64,000 nt of DNA, taken from IMG/VR virus record IMGVR_UViG_3300031933_000215, positions 62,001 to 126,000 of that record. One strand, written 5' to 3'. A program made the translations under genes and the position numbers. Positions 7,210 to 46,148 of this stretch are shown in pieces (positions within the stretch are counted from its first letter, which is position 1; every line of letters starts with the position of its first letter). The notes under the pieces are model-generated. The model was not told the origin of the DNA. It made no database searches and worked only from the letters and a program-made list of their open reading frames with translations.

Positions 7210-7698
7210 ATGAATACCAAGTTACCGCTGGAGACCATGATTGTGGGTGAGATCCACACCAGTCAGAAATCGATCAAACGTGTTGTTGAACTCACGGAGA
7301 TGTTCAAACCGGACATCTTGCTCCATGAGTTACTGTACGATGACCTCTGTATGACGCCTGATGTCATTAAGGAACGACTCCGTAAGTGTCGGATGGGATC
7401 ACTATGCGACCCACGATTGAACAAGGACATATACGAGTTGGGACACCGGTTGGAGTTACCGTTGGTGGGTATTGACTTGCCAAGAGGTGGGACGTTTCGA
7501 GAGCGGGAGACCCACATGGTGTCGAAAATTGAAAGCTGGTACCGCAGGCATCGCGTCTTGGTGGTAGTTGGCGATACCCACCTTAGGGACCGACCCATCC
7601 CGCGTGTTCCTCACCGTTCGTTGATCCGGGACCGGTTTGACAACGACCCCAAGGTAACGATCAGTCGTGTCCCACAACACCTTCGGGAGGTTCGATAA
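7210..7698 (+). CDS. minimal TIKI/TraB/ChaN/EreA-superfamily metalloenzyme-like protein
   Basis: Ordered motifs VGEIH, ILLHE, LVGID, RETHM, VVVGDTH; start taken at ATG 7210 after the terminator. Confidence 0.65.
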   Translation: MNTKLPLETMIVGEIHTSQKSIKRVVELTEMFKPDILLHELLYDDLCMTPDVIKERLRKCRMGSLCDPRLNKDIYELGHRLELPLVGIDLPRGGTFRERETHMVSKIESWYRRHRVLVVVGDTHLRDRPIPRVPHRSLIRDRFDNDPKVTISRVPQHLREVR

Positions 7699-7738
7699 AA
7701 CAATGGTATGTTTCTAAACCTACTGGAAGGAAAATGGA

Positions 7739-8656
7739 ATGCGGGATCTACTTGAGAAAAACTTCCCCTTGGGCACCACCGAGACCAGCGCTGCGGACAT
7801 TGAACAGTCAATGACTGTCTCGGCTGAAGGTTTTCGGGATGTGTTTAATAAACTGTTTGGTGGTGGTAAGGTCGCGAAAACCGACGACACCAACGGGAAC
7901 ATGGACTGGTACCGCCAGCACGTTATTGACGGTAAGGTAAAGGATCTACAGCTTCGTTCGGCTGGACACGTTCTGTTTGGACCACGGTTTGCGCCGTTTA
8001 TGGGTCGTGGCACCACCCAGGTCGTGGACTTTGTACGTGAGGCCAAAAAAGACCTGGTAATGTATCAAGGGTTGTTCAATAAGTACCAGCCGAAAGCAGC
8101 GGATAACAACCGCAAGCTGCAGAAGATCGAAACCGAGGCAGCGCAGTTCCTGAAACGGGACACCCACCCTGAGGGGCTGGACGAATTCATCAAACTGATG
8201 GAAAAGTGGGACACTTGGATCACACCTCTCAACGGGTTGTTTCGTGATCCGTCTCACGTGTTCTTGGGTTACGGCAAAACCTCGTTTTTGTCGGAAGGTG
8301 GTATGTTCGCAGGCGGGCCCGGTACCCTCGACAAAAAGAAAACCCTTCAGTCCGTTAAGATGTCGCTGTTGAAGGAAGACGAGGTCAACCCATTGGTGGG
8401 CCTCATTGAACAAGCCGCTCTGTTGATGTATCGGTGTTCCGAGGTAACCGAAGACGCCATGGGGATCGATTTGACCGACCCACCGTTCCGAGGTTACTAC
8501 GCCGAAGCGATCGAGGCTCGGGATGAAGGGTTCAAGGCCCAGTTTGCACACCCGGATTATGAGATGATCAACACCGACCTGTTTGTGGACCTCAATACCC
8601 GTGTGGGTGAGTTGATGAATGCGATGGTGGCGTACCTGAAGCATTCAGCGGTGTAA
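7739..8656 (+). CDS. putative virion head protein with cleavable propeptide
   Basis: TATG at 7707; N-terminal VSAE|GF matches the S/A/G-x-E prohead-protease motif. Confidence 0.6.
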   Translation: MRDLLEKNFPLGTTETSAADIEQSMTVSAEGFRDVFNKLFGGGKVAKTDDTNGNMDWYRQHVIDGKVKDLQLRSAGHVLFGPRFAPFMGRGTTQVVDFVREAKKDLVMYQGLFNKYQPKAADNNRKLQKIETEAAQFLKRDTHPEGLDEFIKLMEKWDTWITPLNGLFRDPSHVFLGYGKTSFLSEGGMFAGGPGTLDKKKTLQSVKMSLLKEDEVNPLVGLIEQAALLMYRCSEVTEDAMGIDLTDPPFRGYYAEAIEARDEGFKAQFAHPDYEMINTDLFVDLNTRVGELMNAMVAYLKHSAV

Positions 8657-15374: not shown

Positions 15375-16622
15375 ATGAATACTACAGATGAACAGTCGGT
15401 GTTGCTTCCCAATGAGTACGCAACGACACAAAAGTCGTTGGTGGCGGCGTTGGAATGGTTTTCTGATTTACACCAACAGGTGAGCGATCACGGTGTCAGT
15501 CAGGAGGAGGTGCGTGCTTTGGGTGATATGCTCGGGCACGTACAAAAGCTGCCGGCCCCAGAAATCACCGAAGACGACTTTGAGTTTACGCGCACGGTGC
15601 CTTGGGCCACCCCGGCGCTGGAGGCGTACCCGATCAAGAGCTTTACCTCGGAGCGCACCACGCTCAATCAGGAGGTGGCGCTCGAAGGGATTGCGCAGGC
15701 CATGGTACAGACGCTTCAAAAGCTGTTGCGGACGTTGTCGGCGGTGGTCGGCACCACTATGGATTACCTGAAGAAGGCGATTCGCAGTGAGACCATCAGT
15801 GGGTTCAAGTTGAAGAATCTGTACAACGCAGTACTCAAGGCAGCGGAAGGGGCGACCCAAATTGAAACGAAGTACCTGCACGACACATCGAGGATTGAAA
15901 AGGAATTGGTGAAGTATCGCCACAAGATCCTGGACGACTCCCCGGTCAAACGGACTCCGTTTCAGTTAGCTGCCTTTGGTGATCGTGAGTTTGCTCCGAA
16001 AGTCGAAATGACCATCAAGCAGATCCACGATTCAGCGCCTGCACTGGAACGCTACTTGACCCAGGTCAAACAAGTCCTGGGCCAACGTAACGCAACCAAC
16101 ACCGAGGCGTTATCAAACCACCCGGTGTTTCGCAAGCTGAAGGAACTGCGGTGGGACGTGGAGAACCTCTCGGAGAAATCCTCCAGTAAAGATTACGTCA
16201 GTACTCGACGGGGGTTGACGTATCTGACCGACGGACCCAAGCCCCGGGCTCGGTTCCCAGAGAAAGCAGGTAAGCTGGTGCAGTATAAGAAACAACTGTC
16301 CATGTTCGAACAGTTGGATCGACAACTCAACCAGATCTGGAAACAGAACCTGGTGGGGGACGGTGAGGATTTGAAACCGGTCTTGGAAGGTTTGCGAAAA
16401 GCCTCCCGGGCGGTGGAAAACCTTCAATCTGTAACGGAGTTCCTGTTCCGTTACAACCAAGCAAAACGCTCAGCACTGAAGGTGGCCTACAAACTGGAGA
16501 ACAAACGGTTTTCCATGATGTACGGTGCCGCTAAGGAAGCGGCGATTACCGAGCCTCAGAAAGAAGGGCTCCGTGAACTCAAAGACGAGTACACGCAGGT
16601 GATTGCAACGCTGTTGAGTTAA
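15375..16622 (+). CDS. virion head protein, paralog of the previous gene
   Basis: PALEAY...SFT.ER...N..VALEGI; FLF.YN..K and EN.RFS shared with 14140..15345. Confidence 0.7.
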   Translation: MNTTDEQSVLLPNEYATTQKSLVAALEWFSDLHQQVSDHGVSQEEVRALGDMLGHVQKLPAPEITEDDFEFTRTVPWATPALEAYPIKSFTSERTTLNQEVALEGIAQAMVQTLQKLLRTLSAVVGTTMDYLKKAIRSETISGFKLKNLYNAVLKAAEGATQIETKYLHDTSRIEKELVKYRHKILDDSPVKRTPFQLAAFGDREFAPKVEMTIKQIHDSAPALERYLTQVKQVLGQRNATNTEALSNHPVFRKLKELRWDVENLSEKSSSKDYVSTRRGLTYLTDGPKPRARFPEKAGKLVQYKKQLSMFEQLDRQLNQIWKQNLVGDGEDLKPVLEGLRKASRAVENLQSVTEFLFRYNQAKRSALKVAYKLENKRFSMMYGAAKEAAITEPQKEGLRELKDEYTQVIATLLS

Positions 16623-16661
16623 GGCATAACTGGCGGCCCCGAAGGGCCGCCACTATGTCCG
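16623..16661. terminator. bidirectional hairpin flanked by GGCATA and TATGTCC
   Basis: TGGCGGCCC-cgaa-GGGCCGCCA between convergent genes. Confidence 0.75.
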
Positions 16662-19559
16662 TTACTTGGTGTGTTTCATGAACCCGATGTCGATGTCGTC
16701 CTGTACCGTCAACAACTGGTTGGAGAGGATGGTCAACCGTTTACGCAGTGACATCCGAACCGCGTCGTCCTGTATGGTTACCACACTGAACTCGCCGTTC
16801 TTGTTCCCCAAACCACCCGCTTCGATGTTGATCACATCGTCACCGGCGTTGGCTTTCAGTCGGGCAATGATGTCCGACACTGCCACGGTCTTACGGCCCA
16901 ACATCTCGTTGACAATGGTTCGGGTGCTGCGACTGAGCGCGTCACGCAAACTGGCATTGCCAAACGCCGAGTCCCGGAGGTAGTAGTTCACGTAGAACTT
17001 CTGTTCCAACGGGATGGTGGTTTCGTCGCCGTCACGTACCAGGGCCAGCGTATCACCCAGGGTTACCGTTGGGTGCAGGTACAGTTCACTCTGTTCCAGC
17101 AGACGGTCTCGGATGGTGTCCAAATCGTTCCGCAGCCACCCGACGATCTGAAGCGGCACTTCTTCACGGTACGCCAAGGTCTGTTGTTCTTCAGCAAAGT
17201 AATACTTTCCGTCAAACAACAACAGGGTGAACTCCCGAAGAATCTTTCGGGGCGCAACCAGTTCCGGATGACCGTCACTACCCAAGACCACGTCGCCTTT
17301 GACGTGACGATAAACCACGTTACCGTCGCTGTCGTACTTGACGTCACCCACCGCGTGTTCCACCTCGTACGTGATGTTGCCATCGGCGTCCTGACCCAGA
17401 ATCAACTGGCCGTTCTCATCACGTTTGTAGACAGTTTGCTGGTAAGTGTACGGTACGTTGCTGTTGTAACGCTTGTAGCTGGCCTCGCTGATCAAGCTTC
17501 GGTTCCGACGCCACAATCCAGACAGGTCATAGCCCAAACGCAAACGCAGACGTTCACGGCCGACGACCATGAAGTTTTCCGGCAGTAGGTGAGTCTGCAC
17601 CAACGCGTCCAACTCACCGTGTTGGTAGCCTACGGTGGCGCGACTGCTGGCAATGAAGCTGATGTCGAAGTCGGCTTCCAGTGGGACAAAGAACTCATTC
17701 TGGACTTCGTTGTACATGGTGAAGTTCTCAGTACGCAACTCACCCCGTTCATTGATGTCGTAATTGGTTTCGATGTCAAACTGGTAAACCCGCTCGTCAC
17801 CATCCTTACCTACCAGCGTCCCGTTCAAGCTGGCGTAGTTGTTCTCACCTCCCGGCCGGTAACCCAACTGAATGTGGACCTTATCATCCTTGATTTCTTT
17901 GAACTGGTCACTGGAGACCAATTTCACCAACAGCCGGTAACCGGTTGCCGTGCGTTCCAGTCGGTGTTGATCCACTGAGACCTGCATTGCCGAGGTTTCG
18001 TTTTCACCGACAAACACCTTGCGAAGCACTTCGGGCTGGTCCAGGTAATACGGGCGCACGTCGAACCGTTCGTCGGTAGCTTCCAGAACGTAATGGAACG
18101 GGGTATAGAGGAACCGCCGCTCGTTGATCTGACGGGTTTTGATATCGCCCTGAACGGTGTTCAGCTGGTTCAGATCGTAGTCCGAGACCACCGACACCAC
18201 CCCGTCCTTGTACTCGTACAGCAGGTCGGGCGTCAGCGTGATGCGTTGGCCGTTGTCGTACACGTACTGAGACTTGCCCAGTTGTTCCAGGGTTTGCTGA
18301 ACCTGACCCATGGTGCAGCCAATCGCACTGGCGGTGAGGTTGTTGTTCGTAGTCGGCAAATTACGCGACGCCAGGAACTGTCGGTTGGTGATGTTGTCGA
18401 TGTTGGTCACGACCGAGAACCCAAGCGTTTGCAGTTCGGTCTCCAGCTGCGCGTGTGTGATGGGCACACGCATACCACCAAGGCTGTTATTGATCACCCG
18501 GTCACGCAGGGTTTCGAAACTCACCGCCGGACTGCCACCACTGAACCGTTCCGGGCTGATCGCCTGCAGTCGGTTAAACGTGTGCAGCGGTGCGGTGAAC
18601 CGATCATCGTTGTCCAACTCACTCATCTGCATGACAAACTGACTGGCTTGGTAACTACCCAGGTCCATCTCCAGTCGACCCTTGGTCGTGTAGATATCGA
18701 CTCGAACCTCACCGTCGATACTGCCAGTGGTGTTGTAAATCAACGGCAGTTTCACTTTTAGTGTGTTACCAACGACCTGTAGTACCGCCGTCAACTGCGT
18801 GGGATCGTACACCTGTTCAGTGTGGGTCGTTTTGATTTCCTGCCAGGTTCCGTCGTCTTGCGAGACATACACCCGGGCGTAATAGAACGAGTCTTGGAAA
18901 CTGTATTCGGAGGAGTACCCCGATGTGGCGTTGAGCGTTTCGGTGAACGTTTCGATTTTGAATTGCCCCACCGGCACGCGGAGCACCAGCAGCTCATCGC
19001 GGTCGATGTTAACCACGTCCCAATCCACGATGTTCGATTCCAACGTTTGCACCGGAGATGGCCGATCGACGTCGTACACAATTTGCAGACCACCATGGGA
19101 CATCACCCGCAGTTCGATGGGGTACTGCATGGTGAACGTCGTTTCGGCAACGGTAAAGCTGGTGGCGCGTGGGATGGTCAGTTTCCGAACACCGTGACCC
19201 ACACCGGTCGTGACGGCCTTGGCCATCACTTCGGCTTTACTCAGGTAAATCTCAAAGGTGGTCCAAGCCGGGCTGGCAAACCGCCCGAGGTAATCGACGT
19301 CGGCCATGTGCAGGTACAGCTCGTCAGGGGTCAGCGCCATGCTCGGGTAAATGCGACGCAGCAATGCCTCGCCCTCGGTAATGGCCATGCTGGTATTCAA
19401 GATGCCGGCTTCCATCAAAAATGGAAACGGACTGCTGGCGTCAGGAACGTCGTAATCGCCCTGACCACTCAGCTGCGATTCAAGCTCTCCATAAACAACG
19501 TCCTGCATCAAACTGGGGTTGAAGCGAACGTCCTGAAGACGCTTCTTAAAATCACTCAT
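16662..19559 (-). CDS. virion structural protein, probable baseplate wedge (phiKZ gp87-like)
   Basis: 965 aa; baseplate-J-like GGS....ETLRDRVI and YTTKG motifs; synteny. Confidence 0.75.
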   Translation of the reverse strand: MSDFKKRLQDVRFNPSLMQDVVYGELESQLSGQGDYDVPDASSPFPFLMEAGILNTSMAITEGEALLRRIYPSMALTPDELYLHMADVDYLGRFASPAWTTFEIYLSKAEVMAKAVTTGVGHGVRKLTIPRATSFTVAETTFTMQYPIELRVMSHGGLQIVYDVDRPSPVQTLESNIVDWDVVNIDRDELLVLRVPVGQFKIETFTETLNATSGYSSEYSFQDSFYYARVYVSQDDGTWQEIKTTHTEQVYDPTQLTAVLQVVGNTLKVKLPLIYNTTGSIDGEVRVDIYTTKGRLEMDLGSYQASQFVMQMSELDNDDRFTAPLHTFNRLQAISPERFSGGSPAVSFETLRDRVINNSLGGMRVPITHAQLETELQTLGFSVVTNIDNITNRQFLASRNLPTTNNNLTASAIGCTMGQVQQTLEQLGKSQYVYDNGQRITLTPDLLYEYKDGVVSVVSDYDLNQLNTVQGDIKTRQINERRFLYTPFHYVLEATDERFDVRPYYLDQPEVLRKVFVGENETSAMQVSVDQHRLERTATGYRLLVKLVSSDQFKEIKDDKVHIQLGYRPGGENNYASLNGTLVGKDGDERVYQFDIETNYDINERGELRTENFTMYNEVQNEFFVPLEADFDISFIASSRATVGYQHGELDALVQTHLLPENFMVVGRERLRLRLGYDLSGLWRRNRSLISEASYKRYNSNVPYTYQQTVYKRDENGQLILGQDADGNITYEVEHAVGDVKYDSDGNVVYRHVKGDVVLGSDGHPELVAPRKILREFTLLLFDGKYYFAEEQQTLAYREEVPLQIVGWLRNDLDTIRDRLLEQSELYLHPTVTLGDTLALVRDGDETTIPLEQKFYVNYYLRDSAFGNASLRDALSRSTRTIVNEMLGRKTVAVSDIIARLKANAGDDVINIEAGGLGNKNGEFSVVTIQDDAVRMSLRKRLTILSNQLLTVQDDIDIGFMKHTK

Positions 19560-42183: not shown

Positions 42184-44463
42184 ATGGATAATCTGAAGAA
42201 ACTGTTTTCCGATCGCCACGACGCAATGAAAGGCGATTTCGAACTGACTGAATTTGTGGCCTCCCTGGAATCTGCTGGCGACGTCGTCGGTGGTCCCATG
42301 GCCGTATCTCGTGAGCTGGCTGCTCGTGTTTCCACCGAGTCTTTCGGTGAGATGGACCAGGAGTCCATGCACAGCTGTCGCGAACTGTACTCTTCTCTGG
42401 AAGACACCCTGGAGCGTCTGGGCTTTGAAAGCTTCAACGCCAAGCGCGGTGCCGACGCTTCCCGTATCGGCGAGAACCAGGTTCTGGCGGCAACCGTTGC
42501 CAACATCGCTTCCGGCGACGAAGTTCGCTACAAGAAAGCCCTGCGCGGCATGACCAGCGCTCCTCAGTCCAACAACCCGAACGTGGTTAACTTCAACCCG
42601 ATGGTTGAAGGTCCCAACGGTAACATGCCGGTACTGGCCGAAGGTCAAGGCCTGGAAAACTACAACGAGAAGTCCCAGCGTGATTTCCGTGTGGTTTCCG
42701 TTGCCTACAACCTGGCTGCTGCTCGTCAGGACGCGTTTGGCGAAGCCATCTACCCGACTGTGGTTGTGAACCCGACTGAAGGTGGTGTTACCCAGAACCT
42801 GACCTACGCTGCCGTTCTGAAGGACGTGTTCCACGAAGTTACTGGTGCCCTGTTCGACACCCGTGAAGTGAACATGGTTGAAGCCTTCCGTGACCCGGCC
42901 GTTCTGGAAGACGCCAGCACCAAGCTGGTTCCGGTAGTTGACGAGAAAGGCACCAACTCTGACGTATTCGTTGCCGACACCATTGTGGCTCCGAAGACCA
43001 TCGAACTGGACCGTGGCGGTTCTGTTGAAACTGCACCGCTGAAAGTGGGCCACAAGTTCGACCTGATCGGCGTTTCCAACCGTCAGCAGCTGATCGCTGG
43101 CAACCTGCTGGACAGCTCCGACACCATCGATCCGGCCATGCGTCTGAAGAACCTGTACGTTCAGACTGGCGGCACCAACAAGAAGGTTATCCGCTTCACT
43201 GTTGAGCGCATGCCGACTGCTGTGTTCCAGCCGAGCCTGACCAACGACACCCGTATCGCTCAGCTGAACTTCACCACCGAAGACATGGTTGTGAAGGCCG
43301 GCACCAAGGCGGTTGACGGTTCCACTGGCGCTGAGCTGGACGAAATCGCTTCCCGCGAATGGACCCTGCGCCTGAGCGTTGGCGTATCCGGTTCCGTGAG
43401 CCTGTCCAAAGGTGACACCTGGATCAACGCTACTCCGGTAGTGGTTGAGAAAGTACTGGACGCTGAAGGTACTGCTCTGAGCAAGAAAGACGGCGACGTT
43501 GCCACTCTGCTGAACGCCCTGGGCGATCTGACTGTTGTGGGTTACGACCTCGACGCACGCTTCACCAACACCAACCGTCGTGAGCGCGGCCAGCTGGTAC
43601 AGACTCGTACCCTGCAGTTCCGCTACCCGGTTCCGATGCACAGCCCGATCACTCTGCCGATGTCCACCATGGACGAGAACGGCCCGGGCGACGTGGTGAA
43701 GACGCTGACTGTTGCGACCAACATCCGCAACTCCAACAACGCTGTAACTCGCCTGCTGAACTACCTGTCTCAGCTGCGTGAAGTGACTTCTTCCGGTTAC
43801 GACCGTCCGAAGTTCGGTGCTGTTGAAGGTGCTCTGTCTGCCCTGATCCGTCCGACGTACCGTCACGCCAACCTGGACCTGCGTGAAGTCATCGACTCCA
43901 CTCGCAGCGGCGAGCGTTGGGAAGACGTGTGCCAGGCCATCCTGAACACTGTGAAGAGCATGCTGTTCCCGGCCTACCGCGACTCCAACATCGAAGCGGC
44001 TTACCAGACTGTAACTGGTAACGCAGATGAGCGTCCGAAGTTCATCATCGCGACCGACAAGGAAATCGCGCACTACCTGATGCTGAAAGGCGACGACCGG
44101 ACTCTGGGTGCTTACCTGAAGTACGACATCGTCTCCACCAACAACGAGCGTTTCGATGGCAAGATCGTCATCATCCCGACTCGTGAGAACCCGGTTGAGA
44201 ACGACATCCTCAACTTCGGTCAGTTCTACTACGTACCGACCATCGTTGCGGACCTACCGATCAGCCGTAACGGCCAGATCTCTCGTGAGATCGCTGCCGT
44301 ACCGTTCAACCTGCACGTTAACAACATTCCGTTTGCGATCGAAATCGACGTATCCGGTCTGCGTGACGTCATGGGTGAGTCTGTATTCATCAACAAGATC
44401 GGCTCTGCGGCCGACGCTGGTGATACTACAGCTGACAGCGGTGGCACCACTACTACTCCGTAA
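42184..44463 (+). CDS. major capsid protein (phiKZ gp120-like)
   Basis: 759 aa; propeptide ending near GLE|NYNE; YNL.AARQD.FGE..YPT, N.NRR.RG motifs; strong codon bias; strong terminator. Confidence 0.92.
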   Translation: MDNLKKLFSDRHDAMKGDFELTEFVASLESAGDVVGGPMAVSRELAARVSTESFGEMDQESMHSCRELYSSLEDTLERLGFESFNAKRGADASRIGENQVLAATVANIASGDEVRYKKALRGMTSAPQSNNPNVVNFNPMVEGPNGNMPVLAEGQGLENYNEKSQRDFRVVSVAYNLAAARQDAFGEAIYPTVVVNPTEGGVTQNLTYAAVLKDVFHEVTGALFDTREVNMVEAFRDPAVLEDASTKLVPVVDEKGTNSDVFVADTIVAPKTIELDRGGSVETAPLKVGHKFDLIGVSNRQQLIAGNLLDSSDTIDPAMRLKNLYVQTGGTNKKVIRFTVERMPTAVFQPSLTNDTRIAQLNFTTEDMVVKAGTKAVDGSTGAELDEIASREWTLRLSVGVSGSVSLSKGDTWINATPVVVEKVLDAEGTALSKKDGDVATLLNALGDLTVVGYDLDARFTNTNRRERGQLVQTRTLQFRYPVPMHSPITLPMSTMDENGPGDVVKTLTVATNIRNSNNAVTRLLNYLSQLREVTSSGYDRPKFGAVEGALSALIRPTYRHANLDLREVIDSTRSGERWEDVCQAILNTVKSMLFPAYRDSNIEAAYQTVTGNADERPKFIIATDKEIAHYLMLKGDDRTLGAYLKYDIVSTNNERFDGKIVIIPTRENPVENDILNFGQFYYVPTIVADLPISRNGQISREIAAVPFNLHVNNIPFAIEIDVSGLRDVMGESVFINKIGSAADAGDTTADSGGTTTTP

Positions 44464-44489
44464 GCTTTGACTTACCGTAGCTAGTGCAC

Positions 44490-44524
44490 AAAAAGGCGCC
44501 CTTCGGGGCGCCTTTTTTATGTCG
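44490..44524 (+). terminator. intrinsic terminator followed by TATGTCG
   Basis: AAAAAGGCGCCC-TTCG-GGGCGCCTTTTT. Confidence 0.9.
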
Positions 44525-44583: not shown

Positions 44584-45234
44584 ATGACCGAACAAGATTG
44601 TACTGTTGAAGCCCATGTCCCGACTTTGAAAGAACGCTTCAGTGATTGGTGCCGCCGTACCTTCTCCCGACGGGACAATGACTCCGAAATGACGTCCCAC
44701 GCCATGCGGGAATTGACCCAAGCAGGCTTCTTTGATATCGACAGCGACTACGTTGGCATGTTGGGTCCTGCGGTACTGCGTTTGATCCAAACTCACGCCA
44801 AAGAGAACCACAGTGGTTTCTCCTCGTCGATTGCAGTGTCGCTGTTTGACCGGCTGGTGCAAGGTGAACCACTGTCGCCCCTAACGGGTGAAGAGAAAGA
44901 ATGGAGCGAATGGTACGAGGGCGAACTCCGACAAAACCTGCGTTGCAGTAAGATCTTCCAACGTAAAGATGGAACCGCCTACACGCTGGATGCGGTGATC
45001 TTCATTGACCCCAATGGCGCGTCGTTTACTTCCAAGGACAGTATTCGTGACATCCAGTTCCCGTACATGCCTCCGGCTCGACCGGAGTACCAACACAACC
45101 CACCCAAGGAAGTGATTCCGGAGAATCCGGTTAAAGGTACCGAGTTCATGTATAAAGGAGAACACTGGATCTACGATGGCGAATACTGGGTCGATGCTGA
45201 CGACTACCACGGACCCACGGTGATCAGGAGTTAA
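44584..45234 (+). CDS. conserved phage hypothetical protein
   Basis: A.REL, HSGFS, PLSPLTGE..EW, QN.R.S.IF motifs seen in many phage hypotheticals (from memory); C-terminal P.NP.KG...W.YDG..W module. Confidence 0.75.
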   Translation: MTEQDCTVEAHVPTLKERFSDWCRRTFSRRDNDSEMTSHAMRELTQAGFFDIDSDYVGMLGPAVLRLIQTHAKENHSGFSSSIAVSLFDRLVQGEPLSPLTGEEKEWSEWYEGELRQNLRCSKIFQRKDGTAYTLDAVIFIDPNGASFTSKDSIRDIQFPYMPPARPEYQHNPPKEVIPENPVKGTEFMYKGEHWIYDGEYWVDADDYHGPTVIRS

Positions 45235-45255
45235 CTTTTACTCGGTGGGTTATAG

Positions 45256-45530
45256 TATGCCAGTAACGGGTTTGCCTGCCCTGCATCGTTGACCTCGCCC
45301 GTTACTGAGACCCCTGTGATCCAGTCACAGCTTTACGACAAACGGTGGAAGCACTGGAGTACCACCAAAAGGCAATGTTGGCTTTTCATAAATGTCCTCT
45401 TCACTATAGGACTGCCGATAACTGCCCCGTGAGTTGGGAGCCTGACCCAATGCCTTCGAGCAATCGAAGTGCAAACCCTGCACGGGGCAACCTATTCCAA
45501 ACTCCCCTCCCCAAGTGGGAGGGGTTTATG
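45256..45530 (+). ncRNA. candidate ~270-nt structured non-coding RNA
   Basis: Starts at TATG, ends at terminator hairpin; six or more helices, loop-loop complementarity, multibranch 3' domain with GCAA tetraloop. Confidence 0.6.
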
Positions 45531-45555
45531 TTTCCCATCCCACGCAATTTAACCT

Positions 45556-45574
45556 CTATATCACTTAGTTGAAT
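45556..45574 (+). promoter_or_regulatory. putative early promoter
   Basis: CTATATCAC-ttagt-TGAAT. Confidence 0.75.
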
Positions 45575-45607
45575 CAAACCAACCCAATCCAACAAAAGGA
45601 TGACACA

Positions 45608-46057
45608 ATGATCAAAGTTACTTCAGTTGACCCAGTGATCGGTACCAACGAACTGACCAAAGACGACATCATGTACGTCGATACACATTGGTCAGAAATC
45701 GACGGCATTCGCTTCGTGGGCAATCGGTCCGATCTTGAACGGGCCAGTCTGCCTGTTCTGGAGCCGGTAAAGGTCGGCGATCGGTTCTACGGTGTGACAG
45801 TGCAGGTCCATTGGTCCGGTATGGTCGAATTCTGGTTCCATGCGGCGGATAAAGAAAACACACTGCATCTGGCCAAAGCCCTGGCGACTCAAAAGAAGTT
45901 GATTACAACGGTCACACACTTGGCCCGCATCTTGGTCCGTTTCGACCGTGACGGTTCAAGAGTGGGTGAAGTCGATACCTTGGATCGGTTCTATGAGAAC
46001 TTGGACCCGAAACAGCTCGACTACTCCACGTTCACTGGTGATATGATTCCGACATAG
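45608..46057 (+). CDS. hypothetical early protein
   Basis: ATG 45608 with AAGGA; own promoter and terminator. Confidence 0.75.
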   Translation: MIKVTSVDPVIGTNELTKDDIMYVDTHWSEIDGIRFVGNRSDLERASLPVLEPVKVGDRFYGVTVQVHWSGMVEFWFHAADKENTLHLAKALATQKKLITTVTHLARILVRFDRDGSRVGEVDTLDRFYENLDPKQLDYSTFTGDMIPT

Positions 46058-46099: not shown

Positions 46100-46148
46100 C
46101 ATCCCATTTTATTTCAAATCTACATTATAAAGGAGAGTAACGACCCAC

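Follow-up and report, generated by a model that had tools for sequence, protein, structure and literature searches.

Several described RNAs resemble the element reported here in part. The packaging RNA of phi29 (pRNA, Rfam RF00044) is a phage-encoded, non-coding RNA built around a three-way junction, with two loops whose complementarity is kept by covariation. GOLLD and ROOL are large, elaborately folded RNAs of unknown function that are often phage-borne and located beside tRNA genes. The purine and lysine riboswitch aptamers combine a helical junction with a loop-loop interaction between neighbouring hairpins. Among phiKZ-like jumbo phages, a conserved small RNA is known as sRNA005 of 201phi2-1 and the gp182-upstream sRNA of phiKZ, where it is defined by a start site followed closely by a terminator (PMC11512511).

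Here we characterize a structured non-coding RNA of about 270 bases from a phiKZ-like (Chimalliviridae) jumbo phage. The window, the 64,000-nt stretch analysed, comprises bases 62001-126000 of the 231.8-kb IMG/VR contig IMGVR_UViG_3300031933_000215, which carries direct terminal repeats. The RNA occupies window positions 45259 to about 45530 on the + strand, between a conserved TATG and an intrinsic terminator, and is the smallest member of an undescribed family of jumbo-phage RNAs. This assignment rests on folding and comparative evidence rather than on expression data. It upholds the core of the sequence-only reading, which proposed a stand-alone structured RNA of unknown class downstream of the capsid operon, and every pairing listed in that reading is present in the sequence. 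That reading could not see that this copy is the minimal form of a wider family, nor that it lies behind an anti-defence gene rather than directly behind the capsid gene.

Comparison with the described systems shows both parallels and differences. The element shares with pRNA a three-way junction and covarying complementary loops, but this is a resemblance in design only. It does not match the pRNA model, its host virus is a phiKZ-like myovirus rather than a phi29-like podovirus, and nothing here shows that the loops pair between molecules. The family is also patchy among related phages, so it cannot be an essential packaging part. The larger forms of the family, described below, recall GOLLD and ROOL in size and, only loosely in the Ralstonia form, in their proximity to tRNA genes, but no sequence or structure match to those models was found, the carriers are Gram-negative jumbo phages, and the window's copy is only ~270 nt in a genome without a tRNA gene. 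In contrast to the purine and lysine aptamers, the two kissing hairpins are not closed into the junction, and downstream genes are not conserved and have their own promoter-like motif. The RNA of 201phi2-1 and phiKZ is a 5'-UTR-derived sRNA in front of a tail gene, and our junction model finds nothing in 201phi2-1 or PhiPA3.

No Rfam 15 family reached its gathering score anywhere in the window, and permissive scans of 45100-45700 gave only chance-level hits (E 1.6-8.4). The larger forms likewise matched nothing, although the same scans detected tRNAs and a group I intron in related loci, which serves as a positive control. ARAGORN identified no tRNA or tmRNA in the window or in the whole 231.8-kb genome. 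The P6 motif described below did not appear in the papers examined, and literature searches linking jumbo phages with structured RNAs, GOLLD or ROOL found nothing relevant.

The genomic setting is a late-gene neighbourhood. ORF 41589-42119 matches the phiKZ gp119 vertex protein family, and ORF 42184-44463 is the major capsid protein, which is 52-77% identical at DNA level over parts of its length to those of Pseudomonas jumbo phages. The capsid gene has its own terminator, followed at once by a TATG near 44487-44516. ORF 44584-45234 comes next and matches Pfam Tad3 (E 5e-31), a type I Thoeris inhibitor; Tad3 proteins bind the ThsB sensor (PMC13728456). The RNA lies in the 373-nt gap 45235-45607, between this gene and an orphan 149-aa ORF (ATG 45608).

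The + strand of the element folds to -95.1 kcal/mol, against -78.5 +/- 4.9 for 200 dinucleotide shuffles (z -3.40), with no shuffle as good. The opposite strand gives z -1.34, and homologues show the same strand asymmetry. DNA contigs aligned to the stretch were identical to the window, apart from one short unrelated piece, and gave no variants.

Searches by blastn with the intergenic region and with the junction against 50,697 GenBank phages returned no match, even at E 10. By contrast, nhmmer on loci collected through the capsid protein revealed the element downstream of the capsid gene in four other uncultured phages, designated L008 and L004 (93% capsid identity), L005 (81%) and L006/L012 (79%). 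A scan of IMG/VR for the most conserved 21-23 nt, GAGTTGGG-N-G-(N)-CTGA-(N)-CCYAATG, added two records, one of which is Ralstonia phage RP12. By blastn, the RP12 region is also present in RP31, FLC1-1B and FLC4-3B, where the motif lies inside gaps of about 0.9-1.0 kb between annotated genes. Scans of metagenome and bacterial genome collections returned only the same phages plus chance hits inside coding DNA, most of which spell an ankyrin-like ELGADP(N/M) peptide. P6 is therefore not an exact copy of a common host RNA motif. Apart from the P6 motif and a CGAAACC heptamer, the window clade and the Ralstonia clade share no sequence.

All eight sequences examined, five from the window clade and three from the Ralstonia clade, have the same order of core elements. 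P2 (CTGTG/CACAG, 45314-18/45326-30) carries a 7-nt loop, L2 (ATCCAGT), and retains 5/5 pairs in all eight members, with compensatory changes in L004 and in the Ralstonia clade. A linker (45331-45343; 10-17 nt in the family) that always ends in AAC leads to P3 (GGTGG/CCACC, 45344-48/45362-66), which has a 13-nt loop, L3, in this phage. P3 also retains 5/5 pairs in all eight members through three different stem sequences, GGUGG/CCACC, AUGCG/CG(U/C)AU and ACCGC/GCGGU. The complementarity of L2 and L3 (TCCAGT 45320-25 with ACTGGA 45353-58), proposed as kissing loops in the sequence-only reading, is the best-covarying tertiary feature. It is kept through six sequence versions, UCCAGU/ACUGGA, UUCCAAC/GUUGGAG, UCCAAU/AUUGGA, UUCCAG/CUGGAG, CCGAG/CUCGG and CCAAG/CUUGG, and on the MAFFT alignment 96% of cells are paired against 27-49% when slid. 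An A-rich linker (45367-45376, AAAAGGC...), conserved as A(A/C)AA(A/G)GC, follows; the near-identical strain L003/L035 has a single change here (AAAGGGC).

P4 (45377-45419) is a variable hairpin. Its base, GTTGGC/GCCGAT (45377-82/45414-19), shows compensatory changes in L008 and L004, whereas its tip, GTCCT/AGGAC (45394-98/45408-12), is real in this phage but has other sequences in relatives. P4 is absent from L006 and is replaced by a 9-bp hairpin in Ralstonia phages. Two minor pairings of the sequence-only reading are not conserved: AAAAG/CTTTT is not kept in L004 or L005, and the long-range TTGCCT/AGGCAA pairing is present here but not in L008 or L004. RNAalifold offers an alternative in which the 5' end UGCC pairs with GGCA 45486-89 and P4 is extended at the expense of P5. 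This alternative has one compensatory change (UGUC/GACA in L004), which the longer P5 explains as well, and the choice between them is unresolved.

The three-way junction (45424-45488) is formed by P5 (GCCCCGTG/CACGGGGC, 45424-31/45481-88), an AG linker, P6 (TTGGG/CCCAA, 45434-38/45446-50), a short linker, P7 (CTTCGA-GCAA-TCGAAG, 45454-69) and a return linker (45470-80). The linker between P6 and P7 is UGC in four of the five window-clade copies and 1-4 nt in the family. P7 carries a GNRA tetraloop (GCAA or GUAA) in the window clade but not in the Ralstonia clade. The P6 hairpin, GAGUUGGGAG(C)CUGACCCAAUG, forms with its flanks an invariant element, GAGTTGGG-AGCCTGA-CCCAATG (45431-45452). This element is identical across the two distant clades except for the first base of the loop (A or C), the loop length (6-8 nt) and one C-to-U change that makes a G-U pair. 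Because P6 never otherwise varies, its hairpin form is supported only by that G-U change and by the tolerated differences in loop length.

Covariation supports this architecture. On an unfitted MAFFT alignment of the five window-clade sequences, 97.9% of junction cells are paired and 11 of 19 pairs have changes on both sides, whereas sliding the 3' partners by 1-3 columns reduces pairing to 21-44%, with 0-3 compensatory pairs. With the three Ralstonia-clade sequences added, in an alignment fitted by the model, 97.9% of cells are paired, 12 of 19 pairs are compensatory, with 33 compensatory cells, slid controls reach 19-46%, and none of 500 shuffles attains any measure. For the three full-length short forms on plain MAFFT, 58 pairs give 90% paired and 14 compensatory pairs, against 39-49% and at most 4 when slid. 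A hand-segmented comparison, checked by script, shows the core helices fully paired in every member except for two cells of P5 in L005, and 13 G-U pairs against one A-C fix the + strand as the folded one. As only eight sequences from two clades are available, phylogenetic relatedness inflates some of these statistics.

The family occurs in three forms. The short form (window, L008 and L004) starts at the conserved TATG and has a form-specific P1 hairpin, the core and a terminator. In the window, P1 is a 10-bp hairpin (CAGTAACGGG/CCCGTTACTG, 45261-70/45298-307) with a 27-nt apical region; L008 has CAGTAAACGC/GCGTTTACTG and L004 has GATAAT-GTCCTG/CAGGACGTTATTG, and the apical motif YTG..CGTTGR.C is conserved. 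The long form (L005 and L006) measures about 730-810 nt, begins right after a tRNA-Leu and carries a ~420-nt 5' extension that is itself structured, with 31 compensatory pairs between the two sequences. This extension is absent from the window's genome. L006 additionally has a 3' extension. In the Ralstonia form, an upstream gene's terminator and a conserved TATG precede about 780 nt of structure (31 compensatory pairs among three sequences) and a terminator, with the core in the middle; tRNAs lie 1.1-1.5 kb upstream.

The window's copy has the motifs of a late transcription unit. In phiKZ, late promoters are a TATG whose G is the start site, and the motif is necessary for transcription by the non-virion RNA polymerase in vitro (PMC4666361). 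The TATG at 45256-59, with a predicted start at G45259, is kept at the same alignment columns in L008 and L004. TATG is under-represented in the window (98 against 203 expected) and, by a crude estimate, about four times denser in intergenic than in coding DNA of this genome. The 3' boundary is an intrinsic terminator, an 8-bp GC-rich stem at 45504-24 followed by TTTATGTTT (to 45533), and every family member ends in a comparable hairpin plus T-run. There is no terminator between the Tad3 stop (45234) and the RNA, so the RNA is probably also the 3' end of the Tad3 late message. Beyond the terminator lies a promoter-like motif for the next gene, TCTATATCAC-N5-TGAAT (45555-45576), which is conserved at this position in L008, L004, L005 and L006. 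Its core, TCTA[TC]AT[CT]A[CT], recurs ten times on the + strand of the genome, and four of those copies carry the full motif. Late expression by the non-virion RNA polymerase is inferred only, from the TATG and the late-gene neighbourhood.

The element is accessory. Among 31 whole Chimalliviridae records, the junction model found it only in the window and Ralstonia clades and found nothing in 22 other records; it is missing from the complete 231-kb relative L028 (78% capsid identity), PhiPA3, 201phi2-1, Phabio, Psa21, PA7 and Noxifer. A wider capsid-profile search gave only three new genomes, all negative. Relatives without the RNA (L028, L007 and L009) have a compact capsid / 150-180 aa / 405 aa / 545 aa arrangement. 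In the window clade, a variable cargo plus the RNA is inserted between the capsid gene and the 218-250-aa and 404-aa genes, the cargo being Tad3, or other ORFs and a tRNA. No G000 ORF is shared with both Ralstonia phages yet missing from three RNA-less relatives; the co-occurrence analysis gave two single-clade hits without Pfam domains and no consistent candidate. P6-like hairpins, sought as a repeated operator, do not recur elsewhere in these genomes.

Our preferred, though tentative, explanation is that the RNA acts in trans as a compact folded particle, in which P2, the kissing helix and P3 stack into one rod beside the junction. Intramolecular kissing is itself inferred; the 10-17-nt linker can span such a coaxial stack. 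The invariant P6 hairpin would be the contact surface for a partner common to phages of different hosts, either a conserved host factor or a core phage protein, and the RNA would therefore be a decoy or scaffold made in bulk late in infection. Its position in an accessory insertion shared with an anti-Thoeris gene or a tRNA points to host take-over or counter-defence rather than virion assembly. However, this role rests on anatomy and context only, with no partner identified, and the anti-defence link is weak because the Tad3 neighbour is present in only three of the five window-clade phages.

Of the alternatives, all of which we consider unlikely, self-assembly survives best. The L2 and L3 loops could pair between molecules to form dimers, rings or cages, as phi29 pRNA does and as GOLLD and ROOL are reported to do. 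The covarying loops, the ROOL/GOLLD-like size and tRNA proximity of the long forms, and a palindromic GUGGUACCAC element in L005 and L006 are consistent with this possibility. In contrast, the P2-P3 linker is long enough for intramolecular kissing, and no homology to the pRNA, GOLLD or ROOL models was detected. Slightly less likely is a cis-acting element that stabilizes, processes or terminates the late Tad3 or capsid-region transcript without functioning as a free RNA. The absence of a terminator after Tad3 and the co-transcription with a tRNA in L005 and L006 agree with this view. However, the Ralstonia form follows an upstream terminator and has its own TATG, so it is a free-standing unit, upstream genes differ between phages (Tad3, tRNA, others), and a plain terminator hairpin would suffice for 3' protection without an invariant hairpin or covarying kissing loops.

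A ligand-binding role, as a sponge for a small molecule such as an immune signalling nucleotide or NAD-derived product or as a riboswitch acting on its own terminator, is also doubtful. The junction and loop-loop architecture, the invariant junction-proximal sequence, the terminator about 15 nt after the junction and the anti-Thoeris neighbour are compatible with it. Against it, no riboswitch model matches, downstream genes differ (a 149-aa orphan here, 250 aa in L008, others elsewhere) and are preceded by their own promoter-like motif, no conserved antiterminator pairing was found in the alignments, and the Ralstonia form has about 250 nt between the junction and the terminator. A self-cleaving or trans-cleaving ribozyme is improbable. 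The compact pseudoknotted fold has invariant nucleotides near a junction, but no Rfam 15 ribozyme family matches even at E 10, and the invariant nucleotides lie in a hairpin rather than in junction strands. A DNA-level element or a small protein gene is the least likely, although P6 is an inverted repeat in DNA and ORFs of 47-75 aa overlap the region, since the 13 G-U pairs would be A-C mismatches on the other strand, the P6 spacer varies from 6 to 8 nt, substitutions in the 75-aa ORF (45345-45572) fall evenly on codon positions (27/20/19 and 19/21/20), indels of 1, 2, 4 and 7 nt break every frame, and no ribosome-binding site precedes the GTG, which lies inside P3.

The family represents a new, covariation-supported RNA fold with a small core of about 130-190 nt and natural size variants, which suits structural work, and four of its carriers (RP12, RP31, FLC1-1B and FLC4-3B) are cultured phages. 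It also shows that gaps of about 0.9-1.0 kb between annotated genes in deposited jumbo-phage genomes hold unannotated RNA genes. A more far-reaching reading, which we regard as less likely than not, is that the window RNA, as the minimal core of a new class of ornate jumbo-phage RNAs, works as RNA alone. It would do so either as a bulk late decoy that disarms a conserved host RNA-binding or RNA-sensing defence or housekeeping factor through P6, or as a self-assembling particle built through its kissing loops, and in either case it would be an RNA-based accessory weapon of nucleus-forming phages. Such phages shield their DNA from host defences, so their RNA is what remains exposed in the host cytoplasm. 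Conserved, intricately folded, probably abundant late in infection and carried in an accessory island next to an anti-Thoeris gene or a tRNA, this RNA is a candidate for an RNA-level player in that conflict.

The 216-aa ORF at 44584-45234 (+), situated just upstream of the RNA, matches the Pfam family Tad3 (PF25185, type I Thoeris inhibitor; E 5e-31, residues 34-151). Its tblastn relatives are found in unrelated phages of Rhizobium, Xanthomonas, Erwinia and Vibrio, and not in other phiKZ-like phages. This gene looks like a horizontally acquired anti-defence gene.

The capsid gene is followed, at ~44487-44516, by a strong terminator hairpin (GGCGCCC-TTCG-GGGCGCC plus a T-run), whose T-run merges into a TATG. 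This terminator was missed by the consensus scan. The same terminator-then-TATG layout follows the RNA (45525-45530) and the Ralstonia RNA. A recurring motif, TCTATATCAC-N5-TGAAT, with variants such as TCTACATTAT, lies upstream of genes on the + strand. It is located at 45555-45576, 46119-46128 and eight other sites of the phage genome (G000), and probably represents a phage promoter class. The uncultured phiKZ-like relative L008 carries TCTATATTAC at the equivalent place.

The RNA differs in form and context between phages. In two relatives (L034:7497-8312 and L006:~7421-8317), it is a ~730-810-nt form that starts directly after a tRNA-Leu(UAA)-like gene, with an extra 5′ domain that includes a palindromic GUGGUACCAC hairpin. 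L006 lacks the variable hairpin P4 and possesses a 3′ extension. Deposited Ralstonia jumbo-phage genomes feature gaps of about 0.9-1.0 kb between annotated genes, situated about 1.1-1.5 kb downstream of their tRNA genes (L042:3890-4806 in RP12, L043:2897-3936 in FLC1-1B, and L040:~520-1345 on the - strand). Each gap holds a ~780-nt structured RNA with its own TATG and terminator. A near-identical strain (IMGVR_UViG_3300009194_000004; L035/L003) differs from the window's RNA by a single base, in the A-rich linker J3/4, where AAAAGGC becomes AAAGGGC. In the contig of a further close relative, the L004 phage, a group I intron (Rfam RF00028, 72.6 bits) lies on the strand opposite to the capsid gene (L037:8212-8557 (+)).

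The DNA motif of the P6 hairpin coincides with codons for an ankyrin-like ELGADP(N/M) peptide. Exact-pattern scans therefore pick up unrelated protein genes, as observed at loci L044, L045, L050, L052, L054, L055, L057 and L071-L075, which is a trap for motif searches.

Outside the window, two ORFs of G000 (16345-16899 and 185245-185898; 184 and 217 aa, respectively), neither with a Pfam domain, are shared with only one Ralstonia phage each and are absent from closer relatives that lack the RNA. This suggests isolated gene exchange between the clades.
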